Shown here: piece by piece, positions 36,512-64,000 of the stretch
Numbering within the stretch: the stretch's first letter is position 1
Layout: each line of letters opens with the position of its first letter
DNA from: Adineta vaga
Lineage: Eukaryota; Animalia; Rotifera
Reading direction: 5' to 3'
Length of the DNA stretch: 64,000 nt
Assembly: GCA_021613535.1 (NCBI GenBank)
Contig: CP075492.1
Coordinates: 186,001-250,000, forward strand
Made by a program: the position numbers and the translations under genes
Notes under the pieces: model-generated
Told to the model about the DNA's origin: nothing
The model's database searches: none
The model's input: only the letters and a program-made list of their open reading frames with translations

Positions 36512-39500
36512 TCAATGAATCGATAAAATGCGAACGTTACGAAAACAAAAGCGATGCTTAAAATATTGTAAGATAGTGATAAGATAAGGAACAAGAAATC
36601 GAATTACAGTTGATAAACCAGCAAATATACTCAAAAATGTCGTTAATAATTCCAGTGCATTAAATTGATAATAATACGTGTACGTACAATAATTCGAAGA
36701 ACAACTATTGTAAAATTTGTCATAAGATATATTACTTATCCATGATTCAATAAACATTTCATATGCTAACTTTTCAATTGTATCATTGACATTGAATCGT
36801 GTCAATGAATCATTTAATAATTCATTTCTCAAATGTTCAGAAGTTATTGCATCTAATGCATCTCGAACATCAGAAACACATGTTGAAGAATAGAAACATG
36901 ATAATGATGAAAGTAAAATTGTTTCTAATAAATGACAACTAAATATCAAACCTTGAACAATAGTTGATTGATCGTTTTCATCGATTATTTCGGCTGGTGT
37001 CGAACATGTTCGTAGAGTAGAACATGAACAACTTATATTTTGTTTTATATCATCATAAATAACAGATTTAGTGATAAATAAACTATTTGATTCTATATCA
37101 TCTTCAGTTTTGATTATATCCCAATTAGATGAAAATGTTCCTAATAGAGAATTTCCTTGTATAATCATACGTATAAGATCTAATGTTTGTGTAAAACTAA
37201 TTGATACTCTTTGTTGAAATTGATTTATCGTTTGATTTATTTCATTGATAAATTGTACAGAAGGCTGTAATTGATTAGTCAATAAAGTTGATGAAAGGAA
37301 ACTTTTAATGCTATTATTAATAGTATCTTTTGATAATGAGCATAGTGATGCTAAAAACTCGGTAAAGAATGGTTTCCATAACTGGAAACTTCTTCCAGTA
37401 TAAAACTCGGTAACTTTATCGTCGTCCAAATCTAAAACGGCAAAGAAGATATGTCTCACATTTTCTAATCAAAAATTTTATTACTAGAATTGAGAATTAT
37501 CCAAATTTTATCTGTTGTACAAACTTCATGAAATTTATCCACTCGTAATTCACTAATAAATTCGCTATATGGAGTGGAAATCCGTGTACAAGGACAACTA
37601 ATATCATCTGCTTGAAGATCTACCAATAACTGTTCATAATCCATCGTCGAAGATATAGGATGCATTTTAGTTATACTACGTTCAACAACAGCTGTGTAAA
37701 ACAATAAAATACTAAGGGAAGTGAAATAAAGAATTAAATAAGTTCGAGTATAGATTAGTTGTTGATGAATTGATCGCTCATCAGTTGATTCAGTTGTAAA
37801 TAAATTCAGAGTTTTTATTGATTGATAAATGTTAAGGAAAATAGAATTATCACGTCGACGATGACGTTCTTTCCACCAATTAATACAGGAAAAGAAAAGT
37901 TTACCAAACAATGGTAGAATTAATCGAAAACCTTTGTTTAAACCACCACATATGGCAATAAGTAGAAATAATGATGCTAAAAGATTTCGTCGTTGTAGTT
38001 TTAAATATGTACAAGTTATAGGTGCACATTTATTATAAAATTGTTCAAAATTAGTATCATTATTTATTGTTATTTCTGAAAACATTTCTTGAATTAAATT
38101 ATCTGTTATAACATCATTAAATCGACTGAGGATTGATGTATTAAGTGCTTTTATATTTGGTGTAGATTGAGATTTAATAGCGATTGAATAAGTTTCTTTA
38201 ATATATTGAAAATATGTAATGTTATACCACCATCCAATCTTCGATTTTCGAAAACCATCTAAGGGTGTACAACCGATTTTGATGATTTCGAAAAGTATTT
38301 TTGGTGGAAATTGACCCAAGTATGATTCATTTAAGTACAACAAAGGTATAAGATGACACTGTCCATCAGCAGATATACATGAGCACGCACCTTCAGCAGT
38401 GATTTCGTTCTCAGAAAAACTCGAATACGTTGGATATGTAGGGAATATAATATCAAGTTGGTTATCATTCGTTTCAGTAATCTCCAAAATGACATTTGCT
38501 CCATTTAAAAATTGACTGGTATGGAACATGATATTAACCCAATCAATCGTACGTGCAAAATTATCTCGTGTTGTATTGATAAATAAATCGATTATTGCTT
38601 GGGTTTTCTGAAGAAAAACTGATGGAGGAAGAACATCAGCATTGATAAATTGAGTATTAATAAAATTATGTTGTGCATCATCAATATTCATTCGAGCCAT
38701 TGAACAAAAAGTTGATAAAAGTTGAAAATAAGAAGAACCTATTATTCGAAAGTCACGAGTACCCTCAAGGTCATTGTCTATTTCTGGCATGAATTTTGAA
38801 TCTAATCTTGTCAAGTAGTTTAACCATTCAGCTGAAATTAAATCACTTGAACATACTTGATGTAAAATAAATGTTACATTAAGAAATGATTTATATGGAA
38901 TAGATATTTGTGAACAAGGACATTGTAACGTTATTGAATGATCATCATATAATTGTAAATAAATAGGAAGAGATGGATGTTCAACGATTATTAACTGATT
39001 TTCTTCACTAACAAAAATATAAAGTCCAACAGCAATCGAAGAAATAATCATAAGAAGAATAAATATTCTCGTGAATAATCGTTCACGATAGATATGATGC
39101 GGATTACGTGGTGCTGAACTTTCAAAAAGATTCAAAGATAGCACTTGTACTTTGATATATGGAGGTAAAGATCGAATACGGAGCCATACAATGCGACCTA
39201 CAAATGTATTCAGATCTTGGAATGATATGTCATTAAGAGAATGAAATACAACATACCTCGAGTCTGACGTTGTGGTTCTATTTGTGATGCGATCGTAGTA
39301 GGTAAGACATGATTTTTTCTACGTAAGATAATTACTGCAATTAAAGGTGCTAATAATTTGGTTCCAAATGATAAACCACCAAAAACACCAATTATTGTTG
39401 TAAAAACAAAAATAATATGAAAACGACGTGTATATGAATATGAACAATGTTTCGGATTACATTGAGAATAATATAAATCAAAGTAAGTATTAATAATCAG

Positions 39501-40514
39501 TTCTTCAATCATTAATTCATTTAAAAGCATTTTAATTGTTGAATTTAATGAAAAATATTTGAATGACGTGTTTGATAATAGTTGAATATTTCTCGGTAAT
39601 GATGAATGTAAGAGAGAAAAACATGTTTGATTATAATAACATTCAAGTGTTGAAGAAAGTGTTGCATCAATTATTAAACAATCGATGATCATTCCAGGTA
39701 TTGCAATCGAATCATCATCATCATTAATAAATGTAGCAGAACGTGGACAACCTTCGATATTTAAACAAGAACAATTGTCAAATATTCGAGGTGCTGTTTG
39801 AACAGAACCAGATGGATGAGAAAAAAAATAATAATTTGTTTGTAAACCAGAAAGAATTTGATTTCCACTTATCATTCGATGAATAATAAGTAAATTACGA
39901 TTCATTGTCATTTGCGATAATTCTTTTTGATTTTTAAGAGTTGTTTGAACGTGAAATTGAAGAGTTTCTTCATTAAATGCAGTTGAACTAAGAATACGTG
40001 ATGCATTAAAATTTGCGAGAGTATCATCCCAACTTTTTCGACTTGCATTACATAATCCTGCGATTGTTTGCCAAAAAAAGATTAAAGTAACACGAAAATC
40101 ATCGATTGAATGAATTGAAATGTTTGTATTTGTAAATATCATATCAAACCAATTTTGTTCAATAAATTGACTTGAACAAACTTCATGAAATCGAACTTGT
40201 GTTGTCACAAATGTTTGATAATTTATGGCATATTTTGAACATGGACAATTCAAAGTATTTGAATATGCATTGGCTAATTGTAAAAATCTTGTATGGGAAG
40301 GTTTGCTTTCAGTTTGCTCGATCGTTCGGAACATAAATAAGGTAATAGTTGTGATTGATATTAAAGATATTATTAATGAATATACGTAAATACGAGTTGC
40401 AATTTGTTCTTTCAAAAGTGTTCCATCGGTACTTAAAGAATTTTTAAAAAGGTTTAATTGAAGAAATGATTGCCAAAACTTTTTGACTAAGTTGGATACC
40501 GTTTGAAATGCCAT
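36512..40514 (-). CDS. ~1296-aa membrane protein of three tandem TM-(Cys-rich ectodomain)-TM units; introns 39198..39256 and 37432..37484
   Basis: Three ORFs join in frame through GT-AG introns of 59 and 53 nt. Each unit reads LNLF...TR-TM...CPC...H(E/Q)VC...CSC...C...Y..C....C(S/T)Y-TM with (G/A)GL. Confidence 0.85.
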
Positions 40515-41493: not shown

Positions 41494-44400
41494 CCCTCGA
41501 CTGTAAGGAGGGTCATATGAAAAAAAATAGTTTGTCTGTCTGTCTGTTTGTGTCAGGGCCAAAGGTCAAAAAAACATTTGAATCTAAAATCATTCCACAC
41601 TTTGAAAACTTCTAATATAGTGGAGCTAGAACGAGTGGGGATGAAGGGTGGTGAAGCTGGGTGTGGGTGTGGGGTGAAGCCATTGGTGGGTGTATAGGCG
41701 TGGGTGGCGATGTTGGGCGAAGCGATTGGTGGGTATAGGTGTGGGCGAATGGAAACGATGATCGGCGGCTCTAGTCCCTGAGTTTCAGGATTTTAGTTAA
41801 ATTTCGTTTTAGTTGGTGTTGAGTTGTTTGTAATGGAATATGAAGTTGATGTGGGGTTCGGATGGCTAGGAGTGGCGTTAGAACGCAGTTGGAGTGGCTA
41901 GGATGTTCCAACTTTGATTCAACTGTAGCTGATCTTAGGAGCAATAGAAGAACTACAAATAATTTATGTATTGCCGTAGCTAAATGCAGTGTAAGCGGAA
42001 AATAGAGATGTCAAGGAATACATTAGCTAAATTTACTTGGGTCAAATGTAATCCTAATCCATTTAGTTAAACGTATTAAATCTATTGGAAATTTTGCAAA
42101 GACAAAGAAATAGAACGTCGGCAAGTAGCATATGATTATTATTGGTGCTCGTAGTGGAGTAAATTTAGGTTAATGTTAAAAATATTCTTTCGAAGTTGAG
42201 TGTTTACTCCAGTTGGATTGATAAATCGGAGTTGGAGTGGAGTTGCTTGCTCGGGAGTGGCCTATTTGTGGATGGAATAAGGAGTGGTCTCGTCGTAGTG
42301 AAGTTGATGGGTTGAATTATGTAGATTTGGGTGTTGGTGTCGGGAAAAAGATACTGGCCGAGAGGATACTGAGATTGGTGAGTGACGTTGTATAATACAG
42401 AAGCAAATAGTGCATTAAATAAACTTTTACAACATATTAAAACTGTCGGTGGTCGAGTTATGGCATCAGCATATTCTAGAACGGCCTTACGTACTCGTAT
42501 ACATGCACTTATTTTTAATCAAGGTTTACCGAGTATATTTCTTACCATAAATCCAGCCGACATTCATAGTCCTGTAGCATTGTATTTTGCTGGTGTTCAA
42601 CTCAATCTTGATCAAATTAAAGATGAAAAGCTTATGGATACTTATCAAAGAGCCGAAATTATAGCATCTCATCCTGTTGCTACTGTCAAATTTTTCCACT
42701 TATTGATTACCAATATCTTAGATACTATGATAATGGGTGGAGTTCTTGGACCAATAAAGGCTTATTTTGGTACAGTCGAAAGTCAAGGCCGAGGTTCACT
42801 TCACTTACATCTTCTTATTTGGCTTGATCATGATATGAAACCAGCTGATATGAAAGAAAAAATTCAAGATGCTACTTTTCGTAACAAGTTAATAGCATAT
42901 TTAGAAGATATCAACAAAGAAGATTTAGAAGATATCAACAAAGAAGATTTAGATGATTTCAAAGAGAAATAAGTCATCGAATCTTCTGACGGTATGAAAT
43001 ATATTTATTTTATTGAATTGTTCATCTTTCTTTATTTATAGTAGAACTACAACCATCGCAAAATAATATTTATAATGCTTTACGTACTATTGATTTGACA
43101 GGTGCTGTAGAAAATACACATCGGTCGCCTCTTTTTTCAACACCAACTAAGCAGCATTTACCTTCACCATCAATTCCATATAGATCTCCAGTAGCAAGTT
43201 CATTGCCACGAACACCAACACATGATCGATCTGCAATTGGTACGTTACAATAAAATTTTATAAAAATAAAATATTTATTAGTATTTTCAGATACGAATGT
43301 GTCATCTAATCAATCGAAATTACCGCCAGCCTGTTTACCCACTCCAAATCCATCGTCGCCTAATTTTCGATCAAAATTTCGTGCACATGTAGCACAAGTT
43401 GCTGAATCTAGCAATACTCATAAGCACTATGACGCATGCTATAAATACTGCAAGGATGGTAAGAGGATTTGTCGATCAATTATGCCACGAAAAAAGGTAC
43501 CAGTATCAACAATCGATCCAGAAACTGGTGGTATTTCGATGAAACGATCGGATCCATGGATGAATAATTTCAATGACTATATTATCTCAGCTTGTCGATC
43601 CAATATGGATATTAAATTTATTTGGACTGGAAATGATACCAAAGCTTTAGTCTATTATATTACTGATTATGTCACAAAAATGAGTCTCTCATTTCATGAT
43701 ACATTTTCTCTTGTTCAAAAAAGTATTACATCATTACAAAATCCAAACAACCCAACCGACACGGAAAATGTCATTGAGAAATCACGTAAACTCGTTTTAC
43801 GTTGTTATAATGCATTTGCTTCACAACAAGAATTATCTGGTGTGCAAGTTGCTTCTTATCTCATGAATTGGGACGACCATTATACAACACATAAGTTTCA
43901 AGGTCTTTATTTGATTCAAACCGAACGATTTTTACAAAGTGAATTAAATGAAATGCGTGCTAAACAAAATCTTCAATCAACATCGCAGGGTAAGTCTAAT
44001 TAATTCCTTTTATATGTTTATTATTTAATTGACTCTCATACCGTGACAATCTTTTTTTTCTATATGTTAGGCGTGAGAGACGCATAGAGAGAGAGAGAGG
44101 AGAGGAAGAGAGAAGAGAGAAGGAGAAAAAGAAAGAAGGAAGCGAAAAAGAAAAAGAGATAGCGATAGGCTCAAATTGAACATAAGGAAAGTTGACCAAT
44201 AACAATTGATTAGCCGCACACGCATATGTTAAGACAGAAAGGAAAGAGGAATGATAGGAAGAAGGATAACGTTCAATATACAAACAATCAATCTGTGAAA
44301 AATTAAAGGAAAAAGAAAAGGAAACAAGCAGCTTAATACATATTTGAAGCGAAGTCATCAATAAGTCATGTTCGATGAGAAGGTGTTAATGTGATCTCAG

Positions 44401-47400
44401 TACTGTTTCTATAGATAAATATCGAAAAGCAAGTTGAATTATACGAAGATGATTACTTATTGATATATAAAATGATGAAGCAATTCATTTGTGATAATTA
44501 AAAAATGCATGTTTTTTTCATATATAGATGCGATTGATGATGAAGATGTGTTTGATAATGGAGCAATTAACGATGAAAACAACGATGAAGAACATTTTCA
44601 AGTTCAACCGGCGGAAGATAAAAACAATTTTATTCTTGTTAACACACGCATTGATTATCAATACCGTTCAGACATTCTCAACAGCACATGTTTATACGAT
44701 TTTGTCAGTACACTTTACAAGAAAAAAATCAATGAAGCTGATTTAAAATATTTATCGAAGTCTTCCACAACAGAAAAATGACAGGATAATCAAAGAGGTC
44801 GACCATCAAATGAACGTTTTTCTTTTCAAAAAGATCATCCTCAAGCAACAACACATATTCTAATGAAATACAGTCAACTCCATGTACCTGTTCTTTATGG
44901 TCCGCATATTCCTCGGCAAGACCGTGATGATACTCGAGAACGATACAATCGAGCACTTCTCACACTTTTTGTACCATGGCGCAATGCATTTGATCTCTGT
45001 GACGTCAATGAAACGTGGGAAGATGCTTTTGAATATCGAAAAAATCTTATTTCTGCTCATTCGTGGAAGATTATAGAAAATATTCAACTTTTACATGAAT
45101 ATAAAAAAGATTGTGATGAACATCTACTTCAAGTTATTGCTGAAGCACAAACCGAGAATGATTTAATTGATCCTGTATTGTTACCATCAAATCAAGGTGC
45201 TGATGGTGAATACGAAGTAGATGACATCGACGACTTAATTCAATTAATAGGCAATGTAGACGAGTTTACAACTGCTGCAATTAATGCCACGAAAAAATCA
45301 ACAGAAAATGTCTATCTTCGAGAGACTGCTGAAGCTGTCGAAAAGGTTGGACGTTTCGATCGTATGATTCGTAAGTGTTAATTGTTTTATGAATCATATC
45401 ATTCAAACAAAAATATAAATTGTTTTAGAGCAAGATCAACATGTTTCAAATACGGGTATTGATCGACAAATTGTATCGTTTATTTCGCAACGTCTAATCT
45501 AATTAAACTTAATTCAAAATGGCAAGATCAGTTGAAGATTGAAAAAGAACGAATTAGACGCAGTTTGATTTCGGGCAAAGATAACAATGATGATGATACA
45601 TTAAATTTTGATGATGTAACCAACGCCGTTGTAACCGTAGTCAATCCATGTGATAATCGAACTGATTTCGAAAAAAATACATCAATTCCTCCAGTACTTG
45701 TAGTTAGAAACAATTACTCAACTCAAAGCAGCATCATTGATGAATTTACATTGAACAAAGAGCAAAAAGCTGCATTCTTGATAATAACAAGTCATCTCGA
45801 CGGTGATAGTCAATGTCGTACAGGTATTTCCATGAAATAAATCATTACTTCTTTGATTCAATAATCTATTTTAGGTGACAATAATGGTCAACTCATTATG
45901 TGTGTACCTGGATGTGGTGGAACGGGCAAATCACAATTGATTCGTGCTCTTACAAAATATTTTCTTGTTACAAAAAGAATGCAAATGATGCGAAAACTTG
46001 CACCTACCGGAATTGCAGCTGCTGAAATTGATGGCATGACAATTCATTCATTTTTAGGTGAACAACGTAATTCAGGAAAGCCACGTACCATCAAACCAGG
46101 TGATTCCAAACTTGAAAACGAATGGAGACCTGTTGAATACCTTTTAATTGATGAAATGAGTATGGTTGGCTTAACATTATTAGGAAAACTCAATAGAATC
46201 ATTTGCTCTGCCAAACATGTTGATGTTCAAGTTTCATTTGGTGGTGTGAACGTAATCTTCTTTGGTGATTATTTACAATATCGACCTGTTTATGATTCAC
46301 CATTGCATACTGATTTTTCTTTACCATCAAGAGAGAAACAAGGCAAAGTACTATCTGAAAAAGAAATACAACAACGCGTTGCACGCTCTTGCGTTCTCCA
46401 AATGAATTGTGTTGTCAAACTTAGTCAACAGATGCGAACAGAAGATTTACGATATCTTCAATTACTCGATCGGCTTCGTCAAGGTCAATGCAATTATGAC
46501 GATTACGAATTATTGCAAGCACGAGTTGTCGGACAACCATCAATAGAATCTCTACATGATTCACCATGGAACAAAGTAAACCAACTTTTTCATATAAAGA
46601 AAGAACTATTTTCATCTTTTTCAGGCGCCTATTCTCGTGTTTCGAAATGAAGTTCGCACACAATTAAACAACAAAGCTGCAATTCACAATGCAACACAAA
46701 CAGGACATCCACCGATGGTATGCGTCGCTCAAGACACATGTAAAGGCAAAGCAATCAAAGATCCAATGTTGCTTAAGAAATTATTAGAACTATCTGACAG
46801 CAAGACAGAGCATTTACCTGGTCTATTACCTTTTGTACCAGGTATGCCTGTCATTTTAACGCAAAATATTGCTACTGAATTAGGTCTTATCAATGGTATT
46901 AACGGAATATTTCGACAATTGGTATATCATGAAGATTCGGTATCAACAGGAAATCTATCGGAGGTGTTTCCGAATACTACATAATATATTTGTCGACCAA
47001 TATATGCTTTAATTGAGATTGTTAAATCGAAGATTGAATGCAAACTTCAAGATCTTCAAACAAAACTTATATCAATTCCACTTGTAGAACAAACATTTCA
47101 GGTTGACGTTGCTGGTCTTATTCCAAAAGATAAGAAACCAAAATCAAATCAAAAGACAATTCTATCAATTAAACGATCTGCATTACCACTTGTACCTGCT
47201 TATTGTATTACAACACATAAAAGTCAAGGTCAAACATTGAGCAAAGTGGTTATTGATTTAAAATTACCAAATGAAACGGATGATATTGCAGCAGTCTACG
47301 TGCCATTATCTCGCGTAAAACGTTTGGTCGATTTAGCTATTCTACGGCCATTTGATTATAAAGTTTTGCTGATGAAACCATCTTTTAATAAATCTCAAGT

Positions 47401-47908: not shown

Positions 47909-49237
47909 TTATTTGACATGTAGATAGACTTTAATATGGATATATAGAGTAATCTAAAAGTCTTGATACCTCTTAGAAATTCAATTCTCTTCACTGTTAT
48001 AATAAATGAAGAGAAGCTGAAAATTGGACTGATAATCTATTAGTCAGTGATTGATTATAGATTTTTTTTCTACTTTATATATTTGGTTTATAATAAACGA
48101 TGTTTTAATTCTAATTTTCTATTTTAATTTTTGTTTTCTAGTGACTACTGAGAAAATAAATATTGAGATAAACATTATTAAACTATTATTTCTTTTAGAC
48201 TATATTTATTTATTACATTAAACTTTTTATCATTAGTTTGACATAGAATACTAGAACGTTTTCATATCCATATACATAATCGATCAAAGGTAAAATTGTA
48301 TCTATTAGAAGGTATATAATGCTTCTTATATATCTGAAAAAAAACGCCTGATTTTCATCCTAACTTCGAAGTAAATTCCGCCTGACAAACACCGTTTTTT
48401 TTCTCCAAAATCTCTGATGTTTGAAATTTGGATTTACTAAACTTGGTAGCGAATAACCACTAGTGACGGATCGAAGAGCGCAGAGAACCGATTGTAAAGT
48501 CAATGATTCGATATAAATATATACGAAGATACTTTGAGGAAACATAGGAGTGATGCTGAGAGTTAAGAAGATCAACTCGACAAGTATTATTTATTAATAT
48601 ATTTTACAAAGCTGTGCAATATCAATAAAATCGATTGATTTCCAAGAATTTCTTTATTCATAATATTTCATATTTTTATGAGATATTTTTTATATAATTG
48701 TTCATATAGCTTCTTCAAATAATATTCAGTGTTATCATTAATAATTTTATTAATATCGACATCTCCATAATTCATAGATTGTAATTCATTGATATTTCTA
48801 TAGCTATTTGTGACGATTAATTGTGTTAAGATATACGAAATGAAGAGATAATCTGTGTATCCTTTTATTTCATCTAAAAATATCGCATCTATACCGTATT
48901 TCCCACATCCTTATATAGTACTTGGAAGACACAGTATCACTCTACAAAAAACAATAGTCTCCACAGTTAAATTATAAAGACGAGGTGTTGAAATATGACG
49001 TACAAGCAGAGAAGAGAAAGTGAAATATGAAATAGATAACATGGTGTGTAAGAATAGATCATTATATGTGTTTGAAGGAAGAAAAGAAGAAGAAAAAGAA
49101 ATGTATAAGTGATTTGAGATAAAAATCAACATTTGTATACATGCACATGTCTTAGAATATATGAGGAGAAAAAGCAAAAAAAAATTTATAATCGTTTATA
49201 TCGTCACATTATTTGCAACCCATTAATTTCACACCCA

Positions 49238-52200
49238 TTATTCATCAATATCATCATCACTTGGCAAACGATTAAGTGCATTATCATGAACAATTGTTGT
49301 CGGTTGTGATGATGATTTATTTGGCACAAAGAGCCCTACGAGGAAAAAATAAAAATTAACAAGATGAAAGAAAAAAGATATTATTTCAATTATAAATAAA
49401 TTTAATTGTGCATTGATAAGTGACTTACGTGCAGGAAGGCCCTTCCATTGAGTATTCGATGGTAATACGTCGTTTTTCATAACCAATGTGCCTGGATAGA
49501 GTCGATTATTATCCATTACTTTACAGCCTGCCATTACAAGTGAACCACTCATAAATATACACGAGTTACCAACTGAAACCGGTGCTAGTTTTAGAACACG
49601 CTGCTCAAAACTATGACACTAAAGCAATTATAGAGAAAAAATATTTAAATGCAAATAATAAAATGATCATATTTTACTTGGATCTGAACATGTTTATGAA
49701 GTCGAACATTATTTTCAATAGTTATTAGATGATAGTCAGTAAGACAAGAAACATCAGGTACAACGACATTTTCCCCAATATGTGCGCCACATAGACGGAA
49801 GAAACGAATTAACCACTGTGTGTTACCAAGAAATGGACAAACGAATTCTGTATAATCTTGTATCAATCCTCCTGCTATTTCTTCTACTATTTGATAATTT
49901 ATATACGAATTATATCGAGTGAGAGTACAAATAAGTATGGTATGAATGACTAATCCGCCAATGAAACCACTTAATGAATAAATAGTTATTATAATACATT
50001 TAATAATGAAATAAATGAAACATGTACGCCCAATTGGAATAATTTCAATTTGATCTGTTGTCGTCGGATGTAGAGGCATTTCAAATGGCATGCAGTGACC
50101 AGGAACACCAATGAAAACATTTCCTTCTGTACTATGTGTTTCTCGAGAGATACGTGTGAGATTACCAATCATTGTTTGAGATGCAAGATGACTACCAGGT
50201 AAAATTGAACATCCATTAGCAAGATTTGCATGGGATCCAAGTGTTATACGATCGACACAATAATCACCAGATAGTGTTAGTTCAGCAGGAACTAATAATA
50301 CTCCACCAAAAGTAGTAACTCCTGTTTTAATTGTCAAAAGATTCGTTGGATAAGATAAGAAAGTATTTATTTGAGCAAGTTTAACGTTATCTTCAATGTG
50401 ACCACCTAACCAACGAAGTATCGAAGAATAAAAATGATTATATCCGGATGGTAATAACCAAGCATGTTGAAAACTAGATACAATTAATTGGCGAACCCAT
50501 AATTTATGTAAAAATGGCCATGAAGCAATTGCAAACGTTTCACCTGCGGTACAAGTACCAACTATGAACTTAAGTAGAATAAGAGAAACCAAACAACCAA
50601 GAATTGACCATAATGTCCAACAAAATGCAATACTTATAGTCAATGACATCGGTATAATTGTATACACTTTAAAGACAATAATTAAAAGTATATAATGAAT
50701 CAAACTTATTAGTAAAAGTAGAATAGTTTGGAAAAGTTTATGCCATATTGAAAATGTTCTATTATTATGTTTATTTATATCATTTGATAAAGAAGATTTA
50801 TATTGTTCGCCATCAATAATTGTTTGAGATCTAACAAAGCCAGTAACTGATGACATTGGTTGAACAATAATATTATTTTGCATATTAACTTCATTAAATA
50901 GAACTGATCTTGAACCAACTGAACAATTAGAACCAATTTTGATGGGATATAATATAAAAGTATTATTGTCATTATAATATAAACAATTGAGAATTGTATG
51001 ATCACCAATCCATGTTTCATCGTTAATGTCTAATGACCATGGAGCATCCATAGCTGTAGTATAAATATGTGTATTTCGGCCAATACGTGCACCACAAAGA
51101 CGAAGATAATAATTGTAAAATGATGTTCCAGTTATATGTTGTAACCAAAATCTATTATTCTCCCATAATCTATCTAAAAACCACCATCGATAATAATTCG
51201 CAGAAAATGCTATATAATTTTTCTTGTTTTCAAATGCGAGTATACGTGAACAAATAACATAGAACAGAAGATGAATTGTTGGCATAAATAAAAACACATG
51301 TGGATACCATCGAAAACTCAGCATAAATGGCCATAACCATAGACATATGAGAAGTACAATGCCTATAGATTCTACAAAAAATGAAGGTCGATAGCATATA
51401 TATGCCATACGATCTCGTTCTTCTGTAACAATTGCTTCTTGTAATTCACTTGACTGATTCAATAAAGGCTCTATTGCTTTAGCTAATTCTCGAATAGATG
51501 GATTAGAAAATAACAAAACTATATCAATGCTTCCACATATTTTTTGACGAATTAAAGTCAGTGCGAACATAGCATTCAATGATGTTCCACCCAGTTGACC
51601 GAAAGGAACCATGATGGAAGGGGATTCAATATGAAAAGCTTCGCAATAAATATCTTGCAACTGATGTTCCAAAGTTGATAGGGGGACTCTATCATCATAC
51701 TCACTGACGGATGATGAAAAATCAGGTGAGGGTAAATGTTTTCGATCAATTTTTCCATTTGGATTGAGAGGTAATTTATCAAGAATAATGAAATAAGATG
51801 GAATCATATGCGGTGGAAGATGTGATTGACAATATTCATGTAATTCTTTTTCACTAACGACTGAACTTTGAACATAAGCAACTAAATGATCTTCACCCCA
51901 TTTCACCACAACACAAGTAGATATCGATGTAATACTAAGTAGGCATCGTTCAATTTCACCAAGTTCAATTCTTTGTCCATGTAGTTTGACTTGGAAATCT
52001 TTCCTTCCTTGATAGATTAAGTTACCGTTGAAATCCATTTTAACCATATCACCTGTACGATAATTAATATCGCCATCGATTTCGATAAGTGCTTGTGCTG
52101 TCAGATCATCACGGTCAAGATAACCAGCAAAGATACCAACTCCGCGAATTATAACTTCACCTTCTTGGCCAGTTAATATAGGTTGACCAAAGCAGTCGAT

Positions 52201-55200
52201 AACTGTGAAATTGTAGTTGGGCAACGGCCTGCCAAGAGGAATGTTTTCGATATCTGTTCCTAAGTCAATTCGATGGAATAAAGATTGTAGGGTTGTCTCA
52301 GCTGGACCACATAAATTCCACAGCGCATACTGCTGGGCAATATTAATATCTATTAACTTGACCAGATTGATCGAACAACGTTCACCTAATATATGAAAAA
52401 AAAATACGATGACTATCAATCGAAACACTAATACAATTACCCCCTGTGCACAATGATCGCAAATATTTAGTAGCATAAGATTTTTTACTCCTTGCGATAA
52501 AATTGAAAAGATATTGAAGTAACGTCGGCACAGTATATAAAAAAGTAATTTCTTTTCTTTCCATCGTCGTGGACAGATATTCGAAATCTAGATTTCCTCT
52601 CGGATGTAACATCACTAGAGTTGCTCCAATCACCAAACTTCCAAGTATTTCCTGAAGATGAATATCGAATGAACATCGTGCAATTTGAATAATAGTATCG
52701 TTTCTGTTGAATAAATCAATATGTACTAAAGAATGTACAGATTGAGTAAAATTTCTGTGCCAAACTTGAGCCTACGTATACCAAAAATATTTACTATACT
52801 TCATAGTAATTCTTACGCTATCACTCACTGCTTTCGGTAATCCAGTTGATCCACTAGTATAAATGATGTATGCGACACTATTCGCTGCTATAAAAACACT
52901 GGACAAGCCATTTAAATAAACATCAATATTTCCACCCCCATAAGCAACTACTACATTCTCAATACTACATAGAATAATATTACAATCGAAAAAGTTTGCT
53001 GTTAAGTAATGAGCAAAAACAAGATGACTGTGAGTTTGTTCTACGAGTGCATGTAGACGATGTGGTGGATCTCGTGGAGATAACGGGCAATATACACCAC
53101 CTGCCATTAGAATTCCCATTATACCAATTACCTAAAACACGAGAAACTTCCTGATTATAAACATCACAAAATTATCCAACGCAACCTACCATTGATATAC
53201 TTCTCTCCACACATTGACAAATAATATCACCAACATTTACACGATATTCATTCAATAGAGTCAAAGACAATACTTGAACATAATATAACAGTTCACAATA
53301 TGTCAACGACTGTTCATCTAATTCTACAGCTAACTTTTGTGAATAGATCATCGCTTTAGAAACAAACTCATGATGAATGCATTTGACAGATGGATATGAT
53401 ATTTGTGTATTATTCATTGATTGTACAAGTAATTGTTCAGTTGGTAGTGTTAATGATAATTCATACAGTGGTTTCTTCGATTGACTATCAATAATAGATG
53501 CACATAGATCATACAACAGTGAATGAAATTGTTGTGAAATCTTATTCACAGTTTCCACGTGAAACAAATCCAATGATGCATCGATTGTACATGAAAGTTC
53601 ATTAGGATCCAAAGTATGATGAAAAGTGAGAATAAAATCAAATTTACTCATCACTTCATCTTCACTAATCTCAATCGAATATGGTGCTAAAATAAGTTCA
53701 TTATCACCAAGATTTACTTTGTCTTGATCGTCATTTGTCATCGATGTTATAAACTGGAATGATGTATCAAGAAATGCAGGATTTGATAGATGAGGATGTT
53801 GTGCAAGAATACGTTGAAGTGGAAAATATGAATATTTCATAGTATTTGTCATCAAGACTCGCATTTGTTGAGTGAATTGATGAAACGAAGAATGAGGATC
53901 AAGTTGACATCGAAGAGGAATAGCATTGACAAACATTCCAATTAGAGATCTAAATTCATCTCGATAACGTCCATCTGTATTTATTCCAATACAAAGATCT
54001 TGTTCTCCATTAGTTAATTTGAATAAAAGAATAAAATAAATTGTGAGTGCCAAATACTCAAGTGAAATGTTATTTGTCGATGCATATGTAAGAAAGTAAT
54101 GTGAAAGATCTTGTCCAAAATCAAACGAAATAGATGTTCCACGACCAGTTCGATGTTCATTTGCAAGACGATATCGATCATATGGTAATGAAAGAGATTG
54201 ATCAAGTTTACAGTCATGGAGAGTATCAAGCCAAAACATTTCTGCACCAGTCATTGACATTCCTCGTTCGATAGCAGCATCTACATAGAAGAACAACGAT
54301 GAATGACATATGAGAAAGAAAAAGTGCGATGTTGAAGATGTATACTTACAATCAAGATATCGAATATTCATTTCATCATCATTGTTGTTGTTATTGCTAA
54401 GTAATTCACCTGTTGTATATACTTGATTAAGATCATGAAGAAAGATATGCATTGATGGAAAATCAAATGCTGCATGATGAAAATTGAAGATGATTATATC
54501 TTTATGATGAAGTAGATGATCGGAAGAGATGTGTTTGTAATAGACAAGATGACATCGAAAGACAAGACCTTGAGTAAGATTGAAGAGTTGAGGATTTCGT
54601 TTTTCTTCATGTATGATATTGTTGAGTTGTTGTTGTGTTTCATAAGTACTCTCAATAAATGTAAATAATGTCTTTTGATCTGTGGTAATGTCTATGATTC
54701 GTTGCATCAATATATTTTTATCTTTGTCGAAAATGAATGCTGTATGAAGTGCAAGATGTTTGCTGATAGTGAGATCGAGTGCATGTTGAAGTTGTTTGAC
54801 TGATATAGTATTGTTTGTAGAAAGGTGATAAATGAAAGGCATGTTATAGATTGCTATTTGTGGATGATCAGGATCGAATCGTATTTGTTCGTCAAGCCAA
54901 ATGCGAGCTTGTGCATATGATGCTGGTGCTAGAATAATTGTGGTTTGTTTTGTGCATGTAACAATAAAAGCACGAATGATGTGAAGGATATGATAGAACA
55001 TTCTCTCTACTTGTCATGGTATTCTGCCATGAGTCGTATATATAAGTTCATGATGCTTGAGTCATTTGTATATGATGAAACTTCGTGAGCCATATACGTG
55101 TGACTAGGATTAGTGTATGAAGGAGAGTGTGTATGTTTAGTTGGGACATCATCGCTTATTTTTCATCAATAATAGAGGTAGATAAGCTCAGGGTCATGAA

Positions 55201-58200
55201 CCGAATTCAAATGAACTAAAGAACTGATGAGATAGCTCATTTGAGCGAACTAAACTGTACAAACAGTTCTTTTCAACAAACTGAACTTTTCAACTAGTTC
55301 AGTTCATATGAAATCAGCTCTATCATGTCCTACACTAGAGATACCCTAGGATCCTCTAGTCCTATACCAGGCGGTTTCCTCAATTTCGAACTGAGGGCAT
55401 CCATCTGATATAGCATACACGGACTCAAGGGTATCGCCCTAATATAGCATATGGGGGATTTAAGATTGTCTCTCTGATATAGGACATGATACAGTTGAGC
55501 TCATGTGAACTGTTAGAATAGTTCAGTCGCAAGCTGAGCTGTTTGAAAAGGTGGAAGGTTGTGAGCTAAATTCGAACTTTGCCTATCCCTAATCAATAAG
55601 CTTATGTCTCATAACGTTCTCTTACACGCAGACTCAGTATTTGTGCAAGTGGTAGCTTACTACTGTATTCAAAGATTAGTTGTGGATAAAGAACAGAAAA
55701 ATGGAAGTATTCTAGATAACTGCAAAGTTACACAAAAAACACTTTCTAGAAGTCTGCAATATATGTAATACTTAATGCAATTTTTTCTTGAATACTGTCA
55801 TAAAAGTACAAATTGAATTCTATGACGAGTAGTGATCAGTTTAGTTTCAATTTCTTTGGAGAAAATATTTTATCATACCTCTGTTGCTACTGTGAGTTCC
55901 ACTTATCTCTTCATACCCTTAACTTAGATAGTGAATAAATTAAAAATGCTCTAATGAAAAACAGAAGAAAAGAATTTGTTCTCTATCAAAAATAAGAAAA
56001 TTAGATAACATTTCTTTTTTGGAAACTCGTCAATTAATCAACAGAATGACGACTATATAGCTTTTATAGTTGCGGTGGCTAACTCTCGATGCAACTCGAC
56101 ATATATTGTTAAGAAAGTATATTCAAACGACACTGTCATCATTTATGGAATAAATCTCAGTGGATTACGAACACCAAACGTGTGTCGAATAAGCCACTTC
56201 TAATGATTCTCACGTCATCCTATCGCCCACAATGCAAGCCAAGATATTCGCAAAATGAATGAAGATGACGCCGTCTTTAAAAGGCAAAAAGACTGCAGAA
56301 ACCAATTGCATATGGAAATCATTAAAATCAAAGTTAACACATACCTAAGATAAATGTATAGGTCATTATTAGTAATATGGGTCATCAACAACAAGAAAAT
56401 TTTAATCAGAACAAGACAGAAGCCTACCTTCACTTGTGATATTTGATTGTCGATCAAATATAACATCATCGATTTCCTTAGCTTCCTTCGCCAATATAAG
56501 ATCAAGTTTCGATACAGCTGTCCCACACATGTTCACTTCATCCACTATTCCATTCGATACAAACAATTGTTCAATACAATATGAAAATCGTCCACCTATA
56601 TCTGTAACAGTTCCATCATCAAATAAATCATGAGAACATATCAAATGCAATGATAATCGATTATTTTCTAATGTTGGATCATAAATAAATGTTAGCATAA
56701 AATCAAATTTAGCTGCTTCATTCGATTGCTCTAACATTACTGGCTCTAATTTTGTATCATTCATCGATAAGTAACTCTCACTTTCAGATAATGTGATAAA
56801 ATTAAACATTATTTCCAAAAAGTTAAGATTCGATTGGTTGGCATGAAAGTCATTAAGAATATGTTGAAGTGGATAATGAGAATGTTTAAGTATTGATAAA
56901 CACATTTCTCTTACAGAATGAACAACTTCATCAAATGACCAATCTCCATTGAGTTGAATACGATATGGTAATGTTGCTACAAACATTCCTATCATATTAT
57001 ACAATTCAGATCGATATCGATTGGCATTTATACTACCAACACATAAATCAGTTTGATTGTGAGATAATTTAAATAGAAATACATAAAATATCGATAGTCC
57101 AAGTTGAAAAAATGTAAGATGATGTGATGATGCATAGTTTAGAAATGATGTACATGTAACATCATTTAGTATTATTTGAGTTGTAGCACCTAAGCCAGAT
57201 CGATGATGAATTGATGAACGAGATCGATCATATGGTAATGATAATGAATGTTGAAGATCACATCCTTGAAGTTGAGAATACCAAAACTCACGAGATAAGG
57301 TCATATCCATGACATGTTCATGAACAGAATAATCAACATATTGAAATGAATTGTCATCTAGAGATAGCGAACTATGATCTTGATAAGCAAGAGAAAGATC
57401 ACGAATAAAGATTGATGTTGATGCACCATCAAAGAAAGCATGATGAACAGTAAATAATATTAAATCATCTCTATTCAACATATCATCTTCTTCATTTGAA
57501 CTGTGTGTGTGAGAACGAAGAATATGACAATTAATGACATGTCCTTTTGATAAATCAAATAAATCACATTTATTCAAGATTCTCTTCACAATTTCATTCA
57601 TATCGCCATCTTCTCTGGAAACATTCACTATTGAAAAACCAAATGTTTCACTATTATTGCTTAAAGTATTCATATCTCGACAATCTTGTACAATAATACC
57701 ATTTTGATCAAGATAAAGTGCTGTTCTCAGAATCTGATGTTTTCTAATGATACATTGATATGCATGATATAATCGTGAAATTGATATATGATGGTCATTT
57801 ATCGATGATAGACGATATATTAATGGAATAACATACATATTTGTATTGTTATCTGTCGAAGAAGAAGAAGAAGAAGAAAATCGAATATTTTCATCTAAGA
57901 AAATGCGTTCTTGAGCAAAGGATGCTTTCGCTAAAGTGAGAAATAGAATGTGGTTATTAGAGTATTTTTGAGATTATATTTGTTACCTGTAAGGATATTT
58001 AATGAATGCCAAGAATGATCATCTTTACTCAATTCGGTATTGAGAATCTGATGAATAAGTTTTGCATGATCAATGATAGTTGGATGTTGAAATAGATCAG
58101 TAATAGCAATGGAATTTATTTCTAATCGAAATTCTACTTTATAGTGATGTAGAAGTTGCATAATAATTAATGAATGGCCACCAATAGAGAATATGTTTGT

Positions 58201-61200
58201 ATTAGTAGAGATTTGTTTTTGTTTCAATAGATCACACCATATATGATGAATAATAGATTCAATTTTATTTGTTGGTTCTACTAAATCGTTAGTATTGTTG
58301 AGTTTAGTTGAAGAGAGAACAAGGGAATCAGGTGAGGGCAATCGTTTTCGATCAATTTTTCCATTTGGATTGAGAGGTAATTTATCAAGAATAATGAAAT
58401 AAGATGGAATCATATGCGGTGGAAGATGTGATTGACAATATTCATGTAATTCTTTTTCACTAACGACTGAACTTTGAACATAAGCAACTAAATGATCTTC
58501 ACCCCATTTCACCACAACACAAGTAGATATCGATGTAATACTAAGTAGGCATCGTTCAATTTCACCAAGTTCAATTCTTTGTCCATGTAGTTTGACTTGG
58601 AAATCTTTTCTTCCCTCATAATAGACAAGACCATTACGATCTAATTTGACAACATCGCCAGTTTGATAAAACTTTTGTTCATCGATTTCAAGAATAACTT
58701 TTGTGGTCAGATCGTTACGATAAAGATAGCCAGCGAATACACCGCCACCACCAATAAATAGCTCACCTTGTTGGCCAACGGGCACGTGTTGAAAATACAT
58801 ATCCAATACTTTATGATGTTCGTTAGGTAGTAATCTTCCAAGAGCGATAATTGATTCACTGGATCTGGAACTTATACGATGATAGAAGGAAACAACTGTG
58901 GTCTCAGCTGGCGCGTATATATTGTACAGAGTACAGTTGTTGTCAATGTGGCTTTGTAAGCGATGAACAAGTCGTTTCGATATAGGTTCTCCTAGAAAGC
59001 TTAGATGTGTTTTCAACGTACTTTTCATAGTTTACTTACCTCCAAAGCACAGTGATCGTAGCGTTGACAAAGAATCGCAGTGTAGACGTTCAATAGCATC
59101 ACATAAATGATCTAGGAAGGTTGGAACTGGTGCAATACATGTAATTTTTTTAGTTTCGCATATGTTCATAAAATACAAAAAGTCCATGTTTCCATATGGA
59201 TGTAAAAGCACAAGAGATGAAGACAAAAATAAACTACCAATGATCTCCATGGTATGCACATCATATGTAGGAGCACATATTTGCGCCATAACATCATTTT
59301 TCAACAGTATTCCACTATGTTGTAAACTTCGTATAAAATTTGAGAAATTCCGGTGCCTAGTTTGAATCTGGAAAAAAGCAACAAACTGAGGGTGACCCAA
59401 TACAAAGTGTTAACAACATACTGCTTTTGGTACACCTGTCGAACCACTTGTGAAAATGATGTAAGCTATATTATCAGATGATACCGTTATCTTTGAAAGT
59501 TTCTGTGACTCGATATCGCCACTGAAATCTGTATCAGTCAGCAATATATCAATATCCAATAAATTCTGAAGGTCAGAGATCTTTGCTACAGTTGGCTGAT
59601 GAACAATAACAACGTGAGACATCGTTTGTTGTACAAGAGCATGTAACCGATCTTCTGGATCTCGAGGAGATAACGGACAATATACACCACCTGCCATTAG
59701 AATTCCCATTATACCAATTACCTAAAACACGAGAAACTTCCTGATTATAAACATCACAAAATTATCCAACGCAACCTACCATTGATATACTTCTCTCCAC
59801 ACATTGACAAATAATATCACCAACATTTACACGATATTCATTCAATAGAGTCAAAGACAATACTTGAACATAATATAACAGTTCACAATATGTCAAAGAC
59901 TGTTCATCTAATTCTACAGCTAACTTTTGTGAATAGATCATCGCTTTAGAAACAAACTCATGATGAATGCATTTGACAGATGGATATGATATTTGTGTAT
60001 TATTCATTGATTGTACAAGTAATTGTTCAGTTGGTAGTGTTAATGATAATTCATACAGTGGTTTCTTCGATTGACTATCAATAATAGATGCACATAGATC
60101 ATACAACAGTGAATGAAATTGTTGTGAAATCTTATTCACAGTTTCCACGTGAAACAAATCCAATGATGCATCGATTGTACATGAAAGTTCATTAGGATCC
60201 AAAGTATGATGAAAAGTGAGAATAAAATCAAATTTACTCATCACTTCATCTTCACTAATCTCAATCGAATATGGTGCTAAAATAAGTTCACTATCACCAA
60301 GATTTACTTTGTCTTGATCGTCATTTGTCATCGATGTTATAAACTGGAATGATGTATCAAGAAATGCAGGATTTGATAGATGAGGATGTTGTGCAAGAAT
60401 ACGTTGAAGTGGAAAATATGAATATTTCATAGTATTTGTCATCAAGACTCGCATTTGTTGAGTGAATTGATGAAACGAAGAATGAGGATCAAGTTGACAT
60501 CGAAGAGGAATAGCATTGACAAACATTCCAATTAGAGATCTAAATTCATCTCGATAACGTCCATCTGTATTTATTCCAATACAAAGATCTTGTTCTCCAT
60601 TAGTTAATTTGAATAAAAGAATAAAATAAATTGTGAGTGCCAAATACTCAAGTGAAATGTTATTTGTCGATGCATATGTAAGAAAGTAATGTGAAAGATC
60701 TTGTCCAAAATCAAACGAAATAGATGTTCCACGACCAGTTCGATGTTCATTTGCAAGACGATATCGATCATATGGTAATGAAAGAGATTGATCAAGTTTA
60801 CAGTCATGGAGAGTATCAAGCCAAAACATTTCTGCACCAGTCATTGACATTCCTCGTTCGATAGCAGCATCTACATAGAAGAACAACGATGAATGACATA
60901 TGAGAAAGAAAAAGTGCGATGTTGAAGATGTATACTTACAATCAAGATATCGAATATTCATTTCATCATCATTGTTGTTGTTATTGCTAAGTAATTCACC
61001 TGTTGTATATACTTGATTAAGATCATGAAGAAAGATATGCATTGATGGAAAATCAAATGCTGCATGATGAAAATTGAAGATGATTATATCTTTATGATGA
61101 AGTAGATGATCGGAAGAGATGTGTTTGTAATAGACAAGATGACATCGAAAGACAAGACCTTGAGTAAGATTGAAGAGTTGAGGATTTCGTTTTTCTTCAT

Positions 61201-64000
61201 GTATGATATTGTTGAGTTGTTGTTGTGTTTCATAAGTACTCTCAATAAATGTAAATAATGTCTTTTGATCTGTGGTAATGTCTATGATTCGTTGCATCAA
61301 TATATTTTTATCTTTGTCGAAAATGAATGCTGTATGAAGTGCAAGATGTTTGCTGATAGTGAGATCGAGTGCATGTTGAAGTTGTTTGACTGATATAGTA
61401 TTGTTTGTAGAAAGGTGATAAATGAAAGGCATGTTATAGATTGCTATTTGTGGATGATCAGGATCGAATCGTATTTGTTCGTCAAGCCAAATGCGAGCTT
61501 GTGCATATGATGCTGGTGCTAGAATAATTGTGGTTTGTTTTGTGCATGTAACAATAAAAGCACGAATGATGTGAAGGATATGATAGAACATTCTCTCTAC
61601 TTGTCATGGTATTCTGCCATGAGTCGTATATATAAGTTCATGATGCTTGAGTCATTTGTATATGATGAAACTTCGTGAGCCATATACGTGTGACTAGGAT
61701 TAGTGTATGAAGGAGAGTGTGTATGTTTAGTTGGGACATCATCGCTTATTTTTCATCAATAATAGAGGTAGATAAGCTCAGGGTCATGAACCGAATTCAA
61801 ATGAACTAAAGAACTGATGAGATAGCTCATTTGAGCGAACTAAACTGTACAAACAGTTCTTTTCAACAAACTGAACTTTTCAACTAGTTCAGTTCATATG
61901 AAATCAGCTCTATCATGTCCTACACTAGGGAGATACCCTAGGATCCTCTAGTCCTATACCAGGCGGTTTCCTCAATTTCGAACTGAGGGCATCCATCTGA
62001 TATAGCATACACGGACTCAAGGGTATCGCCCTAATATAGCATATGGGGGATTTAAGATTGTCTCTCTGATATAGGACATGATACAGTTGAGCTCATGTGA
62101 ACTGTTAGAATAGTTCAGTCGCAAGCTGAGCTGTTTGAAAAGGTGGAAGGTTGTGAGCTAAATTCGAACTTTGCCTATCCCTAATCAATAAGCTTATGTC
62201 TCATAACGTTCTCTTACACGCAGACTCAGTATTTGTGCAAGTGGTAGCTTACTACTGTATTCAAAGATTAGTTGTGGATAAAGAACAGAAAAATGGAAGT
62301 ATTCTAGATAACTGCAAAGTTACACAAAAAACACTTTCTAGAAGTCTGCAATATATGTAATACTTAATGCAATTTTTTCTTGAATACTGTCATAAAAGTA
62401 CAAATTGAATTCTATGACGAGTAGTGATCAGTTTAGTTTCAATTTCTTTGGAGAAAATATTTTATCATACCTCTGTTGCTACTGTGAGTTCCACTTATCT
62501 CTTCATACCCTTAACTTAGATAGTGAATAAATTAAAAATGCTCTAATGAAAAACAGAAGAAAAGAATTTGTTCTCTATCAAAAATAAGAAAATTAGATAA
62601 CATTTCTTTTTTGGAAACTCGTCAATTAATCAACAGAATGACGACTATATAGCTTTTATAGTTGCGGTGGCTAACTCTCGATGCAACTCGACATATATTG
62701 TTAAGAAAGTATATTCAAACGACACTGTCATCATTTATGGAATAAATCTCAGTGGATTACGAACACCAAACGTGTGTCGAATAAGCCACTTCTAATGATT
62801 CTCACGTCATCCTATCGCCCACAATGCAAGCCAAGATATTCGCAAAAATGAATGAAGATGACGCCGTCTTTAAAAGGCAAAAAGACTGCAGAAACCAATT
62901 GCATATGGAAATCATTAAAATCAAAGTTAACACATACCTAAGATAAATGTATAGGTCATTATTAGTAATATGGGTCATCAACAACAAGAAAATTTTAATC
63001 AGAACAAGACAGAAGCCTACCTTCACTTGTGATATTTGATTGTCGATCAAATATAACATCATCGATTTCCTTAGCTTCCTTCGCCAATATAAGATCAAGT
63101 TTCGATACAGCTGTCCCACACATGTTCACTTCATCCACTATTCCATTCGATACAAACAATTGTTCAATACAATATGAAAATCGTCCACCTATATCTGTAA
63201 CAGTTCCATCATCAAATAAATCATGAGAACATATCAAATGCAATGATAATCGATTATTTTCTAATGTTGGATCATAAATAAATGTTAGCATAAAATCAAA
63301 TTTAGCTGCTTCATTCGATTGCTCTAACATTACTGGCTCTAATTTTGTATCATTCATCGATAAGTAACTCTCACTTTCAGATAATGTGATAAAATTAAAC
63401 ATTATTTCCAAAAAGTTAAGATTCGATTGGTTGGCATGAAAGTCATTAAGAATATGTTGAAGTGGATAATGAGAATGTTTAAGTATTGATAAACACATTT
63501 CTCTTACAGAATGAACAACTTCATCAAATGACCAATCTCCATTGAGTTGAATACGATATGGTAATGTTGCTACAAACATTCCTATCATATTATACAATTC
63601 AGATCGATATCGATTGGCATTTATACTACCAACACATAAATCAGTTTGATTGTGAGATAATTTAAATAGAAATACATAAAATATCGATAGTCCAAGTTGA
63701 AAAAATGTAAGATGATGTGATGATGCATAGTTTAGAAATGATGTACATGTAACATCATTTAGTATTATTTGAGTTGTAGCACCTAAGCCAGATCGATGAT
63801 GAATTGATGAACGAGATCGATCATATGGTAATGATAATGAATGTTGAAGATCACATCCTTGAAGTTGAGAATACCAAAACTCACGAGATAAGGTCATATC
63901 CATGACATGTTCATGAACAGAATAATCAACATATTGAAATGAATTGTCATCTAGAGATAGCGAACTATGATCTTGATAAGCAAGAGAAAGATCACGAATA
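49238..64000 (-). CDS. Intron-containing NRPS, 3' portion: (C)-C-A-T-C-C-A-T-Pls/PosA-like terminal domain; 5' end lies outside the window
   Basis: C motifs HHAFFDG and HHAAFDF. A motifs YII(F/Y)TSGSTGxPK, PAETT, YxTGD, GRKDFQVK, NGKIDR. T motifs GGHSL and GGTSL. Terminal LCGARIG/LCGAHIG, QCHSFEQRVLK...TLVMKND..P..TQWKGLPA. Phase-compatible introns: 61519..63020, 60871..60939, 59722..59779, 59368..59421, 58992..59039, 57931..57986, 54929..56427, 54281..54349, 53132..53189, 52772..52828, 52386..52440, 49619..49677, 49336..49428. Confidence 0.93.
53088..57407. repeat. Copy 1 of a near-identical intragenic duplication (copy 2 = 59678..64000, offset ~6590)
   Basis: Only about four differences noticed by eye over ~4.3 kb, introns included. 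Confidence 0.92.
55173..55591. mobile_element. hAT-type MITE in an NRPS intron
   Basis: 8-bp TSD ATCAATAA, ends TAGAGGTAGA / GCCTATCCCTA, internal inverted repeat tatcatgtccta/taggacatgata. Confidence 0.75.
59678..64000. repeat. Copy 2 of the intragenic NRPS duplication (runs off the window)
   Basis: The 609-aa ORFs are identical except N/S in VNLGD[N/S]EL. Confidence 0.92.
61763..62183. mobile_element. Same hAT-type MITE in the duplicated NRPS intron
   Basis: Same TSD and site as 55173..55591, with a 2-bp indel. Confidence 0.75.

Follow-up and report, generated by a model that had tools for sequence, protein, structure and literature searches.

The 64,000-nucleotide stretch of the Adineta vaga genome analysed here (GenBank assembly GCA_021613535.1, contig CP075492.1, positions 186,001 to 250,000, equivalent to C3:186001-250000; hereafter the window) contains the 3′ end of a megasynthase gene, a polyketide synthase–nonribosomal peptide synthetase (PKS–NRPS) line whose last thiolation (T) domain is followed by a divergent membrane domain of the Pls/PosA type. 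The locus lies on the minus strand of Chrom_3 (C3) at ~235.2-341.3 kb (~106 kb), in a subtelomeric location ~235 kb from one chromosome end, and its domains are ordered, from 5′ to 3′, as a reducing PKS module, 11 NRPS modules and the Pls-type terminal domain. The genome searched was the 100.8-Mb assembly of six contigs; the upstream architecture was read on C3 to 350 kb, and coordinates above 64000 continue the window numbering past the end of the window. Taken together, the anatomy, homology, predicted fold and splicing described below lead us to regard the terminal domain as probably the amide-forming chain-release catalyst of this PKS–NRPS line.

The open reading frame (ORF) at 49645-52476 (minus strand, as are all features of the gene) encodes the end of an AMP-binding domain followed by AMP-binding_C, PP-binding and Hexapep matches in Pfam, and its residues 397-798 match positions 48-456 of the 695-position NCBIfam profile TIGR02353 ('Pls/PosA family non-ribosomal peptide synthetase'; E 6.1e-31, 107.5 bits), while the piece at 49238-49552 matches profile positions 657-695 (E 1.3e-4, 20.5 bits). 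The genome scan with the same profile recovered the locus at 94.7 and 47.6 bits, and a HMMER scan of 1.8 billion proteins returned canonical Pls-like proteins of ~1300 residues at E values from 1e-33 to 1e-16. No thioesterase (TE), terminal reductase (R) or terminal condensation (C) domain was detected after the last T domain with Pfam and NCBIfam profiles. Instead, the T domain (51472-51663; PF00550 at ORF residues 272-335, with the attachment serine in LGGTS at ~51580-51582) leads into three pairs of hydrophobic segments, each followed by a block opening with R-[LW]-[LC]-G-[AG]-x-I-[GE]. The first pair, membrane helices TM1-TM2 (51232-51390, exon residues 332-384), precedes beta-helix block C1 (50749-51102, opening YLRLCGARIG at residue 428), which has a Pfam Hexapep match and a beta-strand ladder in the structural model; TM3-TM4 (50539-50742, residues 548-615) precede C2 (50059-50415, opening ILRWLGGHIE at residue 657); and TM5-TM6 (49918-50049, residues 779-822) precede the first part of C3 (49678-49797, opening FFRLCGAHIG at residue 863), C2 and C3 being placed by motif and by alignment to Pls-like and canonical proteins, respectively. 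The remainder of C3 lies in the following exon, where CHSFEQRVLK...WKGLPA aligns with the canonical QTHLFEDRVMK...W.G.PA. Hydropathy and the model thus both give the six-helix, three-pair topology with a soluble segment after each pair expected of TIGR02353, a family described as having six membrane helices in three pairs, segments of ~180 residues and three beta-helices arranged with roughly three-fold symmetry (PMC10522769).

All searches, alignments and structure predictions were run on single exons rather than on a joined protein. An AlphaFold2 model of the 563 residues encoded by 49678-51366, built from an alignment of 44 homologues and ending before the last 63 residues of C3, which lie in the next exon, reached a pLDDT of 90.4 and a pTM of 0.89 and contains three helix pairs (model helices 2-20 and 22-43, 207-237 and 242-269, and 445-484 and 492-508) alternating with three beta-ladder regions. 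Compared with the ESM Atlas, the model superposed on Actinomycetota clusters with template-modelling (TM) scores of 0.86-0.88 and root-mean-square deviations of 3.1-3.5 Å over 548-552 residues, one of these clusters being named 'putative Pls/PosA family non-ribosomal peptide synthetase', and on an Ascomycota cluster with a TM score of 0.81. In the PDB, only hexapeptide acyltransferases matched, one beta-helix block at a time. The three left-handed beta-helix blocks are modelled as a pseudo-trimer packed on the helical bundle, as in the predicted Pls/PosA fold.

RNA contigs from four runs, mapped on 48800-54700, define the 3′ end of the gene exon by exon; the run type was guessed, but the contigs lack the introns, and these introns were seen in contigs from at least three studies. 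Five minus-strand GT..AG introns are spliced out (49336-49428, 49619-49677, 52386-52440, 52772-52828 and 53132-53189), and frame bookkeeping across the exons gives a spliced reading frame that stays open from 54280 to the stop codon at 49238-49240. Upstream of a 69-nt intron at 54281-54349, a further exon of the last C domain (Cb) reaches to a conserved acceptor near 54929. Most of the last C domain is encoded by 53190-54280 (Pfam Condensation on ORF 53172-55001; RNA joints 53132-53189 and 54281-54349; open frame), the N-terminal part of the last adenylation (A) domain by 52829-53131 (Pfam AMP-binding profile positions 64-180, with GT..AG introns on both sides in RNA), and the middle of that domain, including the core A4 FD motif, by 52441-52771 (tblastn to A_mid; RNA joints 52772-52828 and 52386-52440; open frame). 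The following exon, 49678-52385, is 2708 nt long and, by Pfam and NCBIfam matches, carries the end of the A domain, its C-terminal subdomain, the T domain and the terminal domain up to the start of C3 in 902 codons without a stop; RNA contig coverage is unbroken over 49678-51767, and overlapping contigs extend it to 53128. A 59-nt intron at 49619-49677 (GTAAAA..CTTTAG; joint in RNA contigs X1, X2, X5 and X6) interrupts C3, and paralogous loci have an intron at about the same TIGR02353 position (~631), their profile matches breaking at 631-637. The rest of C3 lies at 49429-49618, with its conserved His at 49613-49615, and is assigned by TIGR02353 positions 657-695 and the canonical alignment. 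It is followed by a 93-nt intron at 49336-49428 (GTAAGT..TCGTAG; joint in X1, X2 and X6), which is in frame, so that the unspliced ORF also reads through it, and by the last coding part at 49238-49335 (~32 residues and the stop), over which RNA contigs are unbroken (48862-49334 and 48841-49334); the 3′ untranslated region (UTR) runs to about 48841-48862. One 2625-nt contig runs from the 3′ UTR through the entire terminal domain and the T domain into the A subdomain, and overlapping contigs extend into the A and C domains.

A first-pass annotation of this DNA had proposed that a Pls-like membrane domain replaces TE or R at 49238-52385, and the RNA data bear this out, the lower limit being the stop codon and the upper limit a genuine exon boundary. 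The ~670 residues that it described after the last A-T pair as three hydrophobic and hexapeptide blocks correspond to the ~690 residues between the T domain and the stop. The QCHSFEQRVLK segment that it noted is real and spans the 59-nt intron, but the protein does not end at ...WKGLPA as supposed, being ~32 residues longer. The suggested relationship to Pls/PosA is supported by both the profile matches and the predicted fold, which superposes as described above. Because the terminal domain shares an exon, an RNA contig and thus a polypeptide with the A-T pair that directly precedes it, the proposed fusion also holds, and the spliced RNA contigs that join it to the T domain and A subdomain show that it is neither a separate nor a silent gene.

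Past the ends of the RNA contigs, at 48670-48814, lies a decayed methyltransferase remnant interrupted by a stop (28% identity over 72 residues, E 1e-5 to 2e-6, in tblastn searches with the P0012 and P0003 tails). In gene models of the A. steineri orthologs, the terminal domain is followed, over 0.8-kb 'introns', by a methyltransferase domain; we looked for an intact counterpart in A. vaga, and only this remnant is present.

Upstream of the terminal domain, tblastn placed 11 repeats of the order Cb-A-T-Ca on the minus strand, reaching coordinate 143,343, and, beyond them, an additional C domain together with a reducing PKS module (KS, AT, DH, ER, KR and ACP) with its start at an ATG near 155,259. 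Each module has two condensation-type domains in tandem, Ca then Cb, that are ~34% identical (for example Ca at 56405-57838, minus strand), and the first module, behind the PKS ACP, likewise has a C-C pair. We considered whether Ca could be an epimerisation domain, giving a C-A-T-E module, and ruled this out because its best PDB matches are the condensation domains Txo2, TycC and AB3403. The C domains of adjoining modules, repeated every 6590 nt, share 99.8-100% identity (53172-55001 versus 59762-61591; also 56402-57838 and C3:249000 onward), consistent with either very recent tandem duplication or homogenisation, and RNA contigs break at these near-identical repeats. Two modules are split by gaps of 7 kb (C3:267.4-274.4 kb) and 4 kb (C3:299.9-304.0 kb) between the middle and C-terminal A-domain exons, probably through insertions into introns. 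The last A-T pair is 55% identical to that of the neighbouring module and 30-32% identical to Pls-type A-T pairs, indicating that the Pls-type end piece sits on an ordinary module of the line. The PKS module at the head of the locus (C3:332.5-341.3 kb, minus strand) may belong to the same gene as the NRPS modules; the spacer after it has a G+C content of only 27%, and the next C frame has an early ATG. The KR/ACP ORF of the PKS carries a tail of ~160 residues with 'QPLGPY' that by eye resembles the start of a thioesterase and lacks GxSxG.

Every Ca frame runs into a stop codon within 7 codons of its conserved end; the 0.8-5.5 kb that follow lack coding capacity. These spacers could be intergenic, and the C-A-T-terminal unit could be an independent gene that begins with the ATG at 55001 and acts in trans with separate C-A-T-C proteins or alone. 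The in-frame ATG of this Cb copy fits such an arrangement, as does the size of the spacers, which as introns would be unusual beside the 55-93-nt introns seen here, and metagenomic relatives such as P0087 are single C-A-T-terminal ORFs. Conservation of the Ca exon, however, ends exactly at GAAG/GTAGG or GAAG/GTATG (the slash marking the exon edge) in all 11 copies and resumes in Cb exactly after tatAG/CACCAGCA (also given as tatAG/CACCAGCATCATATGCACAA), again in 11 of 11, so that the edges are a GT donor and an AG acceptor, and their phases match (phase 1, with one base before the intron and two after). In three of the 11 Cb frames, the stretch from the upstream stop to the conserved exon start contains no ATG. 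Gene models of A. steineri splice at the same Ca-Cb site over 1.1-2.4 kb, and A. vaga gene models likewise bridge the junction. RNA contig X1 record 4 also extends 1000 nt past 54700, beyond what an mRNA starting just upstream of 55001 allows. Intergenic spacers are thus less likely given the conserved donors and acceptors and the ATG-less Cb frames, and we consider an independent gene starting at 55001 unlikely. From the conserved splice signals and the ATG-less Cb frames, we infer a single NRPS gene in which the spacers are long introns and all 11 modules are presumably carried in one mRNA. Nowell et al. 2024 rate the cluster 'intact', with an estimated 20,965 residues (PMC11258130). The first-pass attachment of the terminal domain to a multimodular C-C-A-T line is accordingly supported indirectly by the splice signals and the A. 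steineri models. Among the best 120 listed proteins bridging the Ca-Cb junction, all were gene-model proteins and none was derived from Logan.

The terminal domain belongs to a family with several members in this genome. The TIGR02353 scan found at least 15 A. vaga loci with the domain, two of them canonical (513 and 508 bits) and about 14 divergent (90-134 bits), and the locus described here is among the divergent ones. Neither canonical match, at C1:880858-882927 (508.4 bits) and C1:11882475-11884550 (512.7 bits), contains an intron or internal stop, and the former corresponds to region1.2 of Nowell et al., a protein of 1330 residues listed without a C domain; through these genes, A. vaga may also make a true homo-poly-amino acid. 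In a maximum-likelihood tree, both canonical A. vaga genes nest among the ~1300-residue Pls-like proteins and are not sister to the clade of the studied gene, indicating that its terminal domain is not a recent copy of theirs. The rotifer class forms one side of a branch with a Shimodaira–Hasegawa-like approximate likelihood ratio test (SH-aLRT) value of 99. Between the rotifer and canonical classes lie two other multimodular proteins from eukaryotes, P0143 and P0186, a placement that is unsure because the branches are very long (2.07). Outside this genome, the named members of the divergent class are all from bdelloids (Adineta, Rotaria and Didymodactylos), across which the clade is kept at full length; its other members are metagenomic, and one inspected contig is eukaryote-like.

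Comparison of the two classes shows which residues are shared. The H, E and R of an H-x-x-E-x-R motif in C3 are conserved in both, as are the block-opening Arg, N384, S172 and T516, and in both classes the motif His occurs only in block C3. Across the three bdelloid genera, the C3 His-x-x-Glu-x-Arg motif and the Arg-x-x-Gly-Ala-x-Ile-Gly openings of all three blocks are kept. In canonical enzymes, the Pls-type terminal domain joins a T-bound aminoacyl thioester to the amine of a free acceptor, that is, the free growing chain (PMC10522769). We infer a related catalysis and acceptor for the rotifer domain, as follows. The last C-A-T module, fused to the divergent domain of six membrane helices and three left-handed beta-helix blocks, would hold the finished thioester, probably that of an N-acylated peptide of 11 residues, on its T domain at the cytosolic side of a membrane. 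The C3 His-x-x-Glu-x-Arg motif would activate an incoming amine, or possibly a hydroxyl, and the acyl chain would be transferred to this nucleophile and leave the enzyme at the membrane. Candidate nucleophiles are a small free amine, a membrane-bound acceptor or an amine on one of the peptide's own side chains, the last of which would yield a macrolactam. The C3 His is a putative catalytic residue by analogy with other hexapeptide acyltransferases.

The first-pass annotation had envisaged a short peptide unit that the line polymerises, and a true polymerase, joining copies of the line's peptide or of its last residue as Pls does with lysine, would draw on the homology and fold that the domain has in common with iterative polymerases and on an acceptor site that, taking a free growing chain in Pls (PMC10522769), could equally take an earlier product. 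The line is not built for a short unit, however. It has 11 modules, and the reducing PKS module and C domain at its start suggest that the peptide is probably N-acylated and its N-terminus unable to act as a nucleophile, which makes head-to-tail polymerisation unlikely. The last A-T pair resembles its neighbour in the line far more than it does Pls-type pairs, and six acidic positions of the polycation-making enzymes are lost, one Glu having become Lys or Arg. We therefore view polymerisation as improbable. A membrane anchor without catalytic activity, with release by hydrolysis or via a tandem C domain, would accommodate the strong divergence of the domain from canonical members, its score below the family cut-off, the many changed canonical positions and the surplus C domain in every module. 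Against an anchor stand the C3 motif and all three block openings, kept across three bdelloid genera, and the three beta-helix blocks, kept at full length rather than helices alone; nor was a TE, R or terminal C domain detected after the last T domain. We think this reading unlikely.

Amide-forming chain release by the terminal domain, which we favour, has its own difficulties. The summed TIGR02353 score of ~128-142 bits does not reach the curated cut-off of 423.1 bits, and identity to canonical ~1300-residue Pls-like domains is 18-23%. The six lost acidic positions are kept by at least 82% of canonical sequences (alignment columns D191 to W, E216 to N or Q, E468 to K or R, D494 to G, D783 to H, Y or Q, and D806 to Q or H), so that the rotifer domain may use another acceptor and perhaps another chemistry. 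No catalytic residue of Pls is mapped in the literature that we found, which is why the role of the C3 His is argued from other hexapeptide acyltransferases; the family has no solved structure, a sequence search of the PDB giving nothing better than E 0.03, and our literature search found no cryo-EM paper on Pls and no biochemical study of any member of the divergent clade. The RNA evidence covers 48800-54700, which ends short of the nearest Ca-to-Cb junction, and two upstream Ca copies (C3:318.2-319.8 kb and 324.2-325.8 kb) are each divided between two frames, which may reflect extra introns or frameshifts. These points count against release by the terminal domain of an intact line. Judging from the residues kept and lost, we read the pattern as the same acyl-transfer chemistry, probably directed to a different, non-polycationic acceptor. 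A broader proposal, which we put forward only tentatively, is that membrane beta-helix domains of the Pls type form a general, as yet unrecognised class of NRPS termination domain, by which bdelloids and a few other eukaryotes would release long N-acylated peptides at the membrane to an amine or hydroxyl, perhaps of a lipid or polyamine, with release coupled to insertion or export, the acidic pocket residues having been lost and the His-Glu-Arg core kept.

NRPS lines ordinarily end in a thioesterase, a terminal reductase or, in fungi, a terminal C domain. The terminal domain described here occupies the same position after the last T domain and presumably performs the same task, whereas those release domains have unrelated folds and none is an integral membrane protein. 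A closer comparison is with Pls of Streptomyces albulus and PosA of Acinetobacter baumannii, in which a T domain is likewise followed by a C-terminal domain of six helices and three beta-helices, and with which it shares the predicted pseudo-trimeric fold, the C3 H-x-x-E-x-R motif and a closing W-x-G-x-P. Pls and PosA, in contrast, are single A-T modules of ~1300 residues that polymerise one diamino acid, while here the domain closes an 11-module line behind a PKS in an intron-bearing animal gene. The single-module, C-less architecture of Pls is not found, since the transcript also encodes a C domain ahead of the A domain, and ten more modules and the PKS lie upstream. The ~630 residues of the rotifer domain compare with ~700-730 in canonical Pls/PosA (~730 in PMC10522769). 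The fungal-type match is the Ascomycota cluster already mentioned. Among eukaryotes, the epsilon-poly-lysine synthetase of Epichloe festucae is reportedly a Pls-family member and a single-module homopolymer synthetase. In P0143 (formyltransferase-A-T-C-A-T-terminal, 3171 residues, GCA_017884045.1) and P0186 (6612 residues, Siphonaria sp. JEL0065, flagged as a possible contaminant), a Pls-type domain likewise ends a line of more than one module, but the module sets differ from that of A. vaga and the called genes have no introns. The P0143 ORF, sister to the rotifer clade in the tree, is intronless on JABBYD010000051.1 10001-19516, a eukaryotic contig on which a histone, DWNN and a 7tm_3 receptor are among the neighbouring genes.

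The locus is one of roughly 40 subtelomeric, intron-bearing clusters of the Av20 genome reported by Nowell et al. 2024 (PMC11258130), namely region3.1 (Chrom_3:225210..345004), whose coding sequence Chrom_3_273 (235645..238476) corresponds to window positions 49645-52476. Sheet 'nrps in Av20' of their Supplementary Data 9 gives 'NRPS_term' as an additional domain for region3.1 as well as for region1.2, region1.7 and region2.4 (PMC11258130). The domain call is therefore already public, and the first-pass term 'undescribed' does not hold for it; the term does hold for its interpretation, since NRPS_term is undiscussed in the main text and supplement. The main text mentions no Pls, polylysine, transmembrane domains or hexapeptide, the supplement has no entry for Pls, TIGR02353 or 'lysine synth' (PMC11258130), and the SeMPI product predictions for bdelloid clusters in that study do not discuss the terminal domain. 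Nonribosomal Peptide Synthetases in Animals (PMC10531068) likewise contains no mention of Pls, polylysine, transmembrane domains or hexapeptide. If our reading is right, a Pls-type membrane domain ending an 11-module PKS–NRPS line would constitute a further logic of release, and one that would decide the form of the product, whether linear amide, side-chain macrolactam or conjugate. With at least 15 loci in A. vaga and representatives in three bdelloid genera, the domain may govern a sizeable share of the horizontally acquired chemistry of these animals, and a divergent subfamily that retains only some of the conserved residues provides a natural experiment on the requirements for catalysis by Pls domains.

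Elsewhere in the window, Pfam gave no match at E 0.001 for two of the three large minus-strand ORFs at 36512-40514 (37465-39144 and 39210-40514). Just downstream of the 3′ end of the megasynthase gene, a fragmented Helitron-like element lies on the plus strand at 42382-46984, its Helitron_like_N (E 3e-26) and PIF1-like helicase (E 8e-21) matches falling in separate ORFs.

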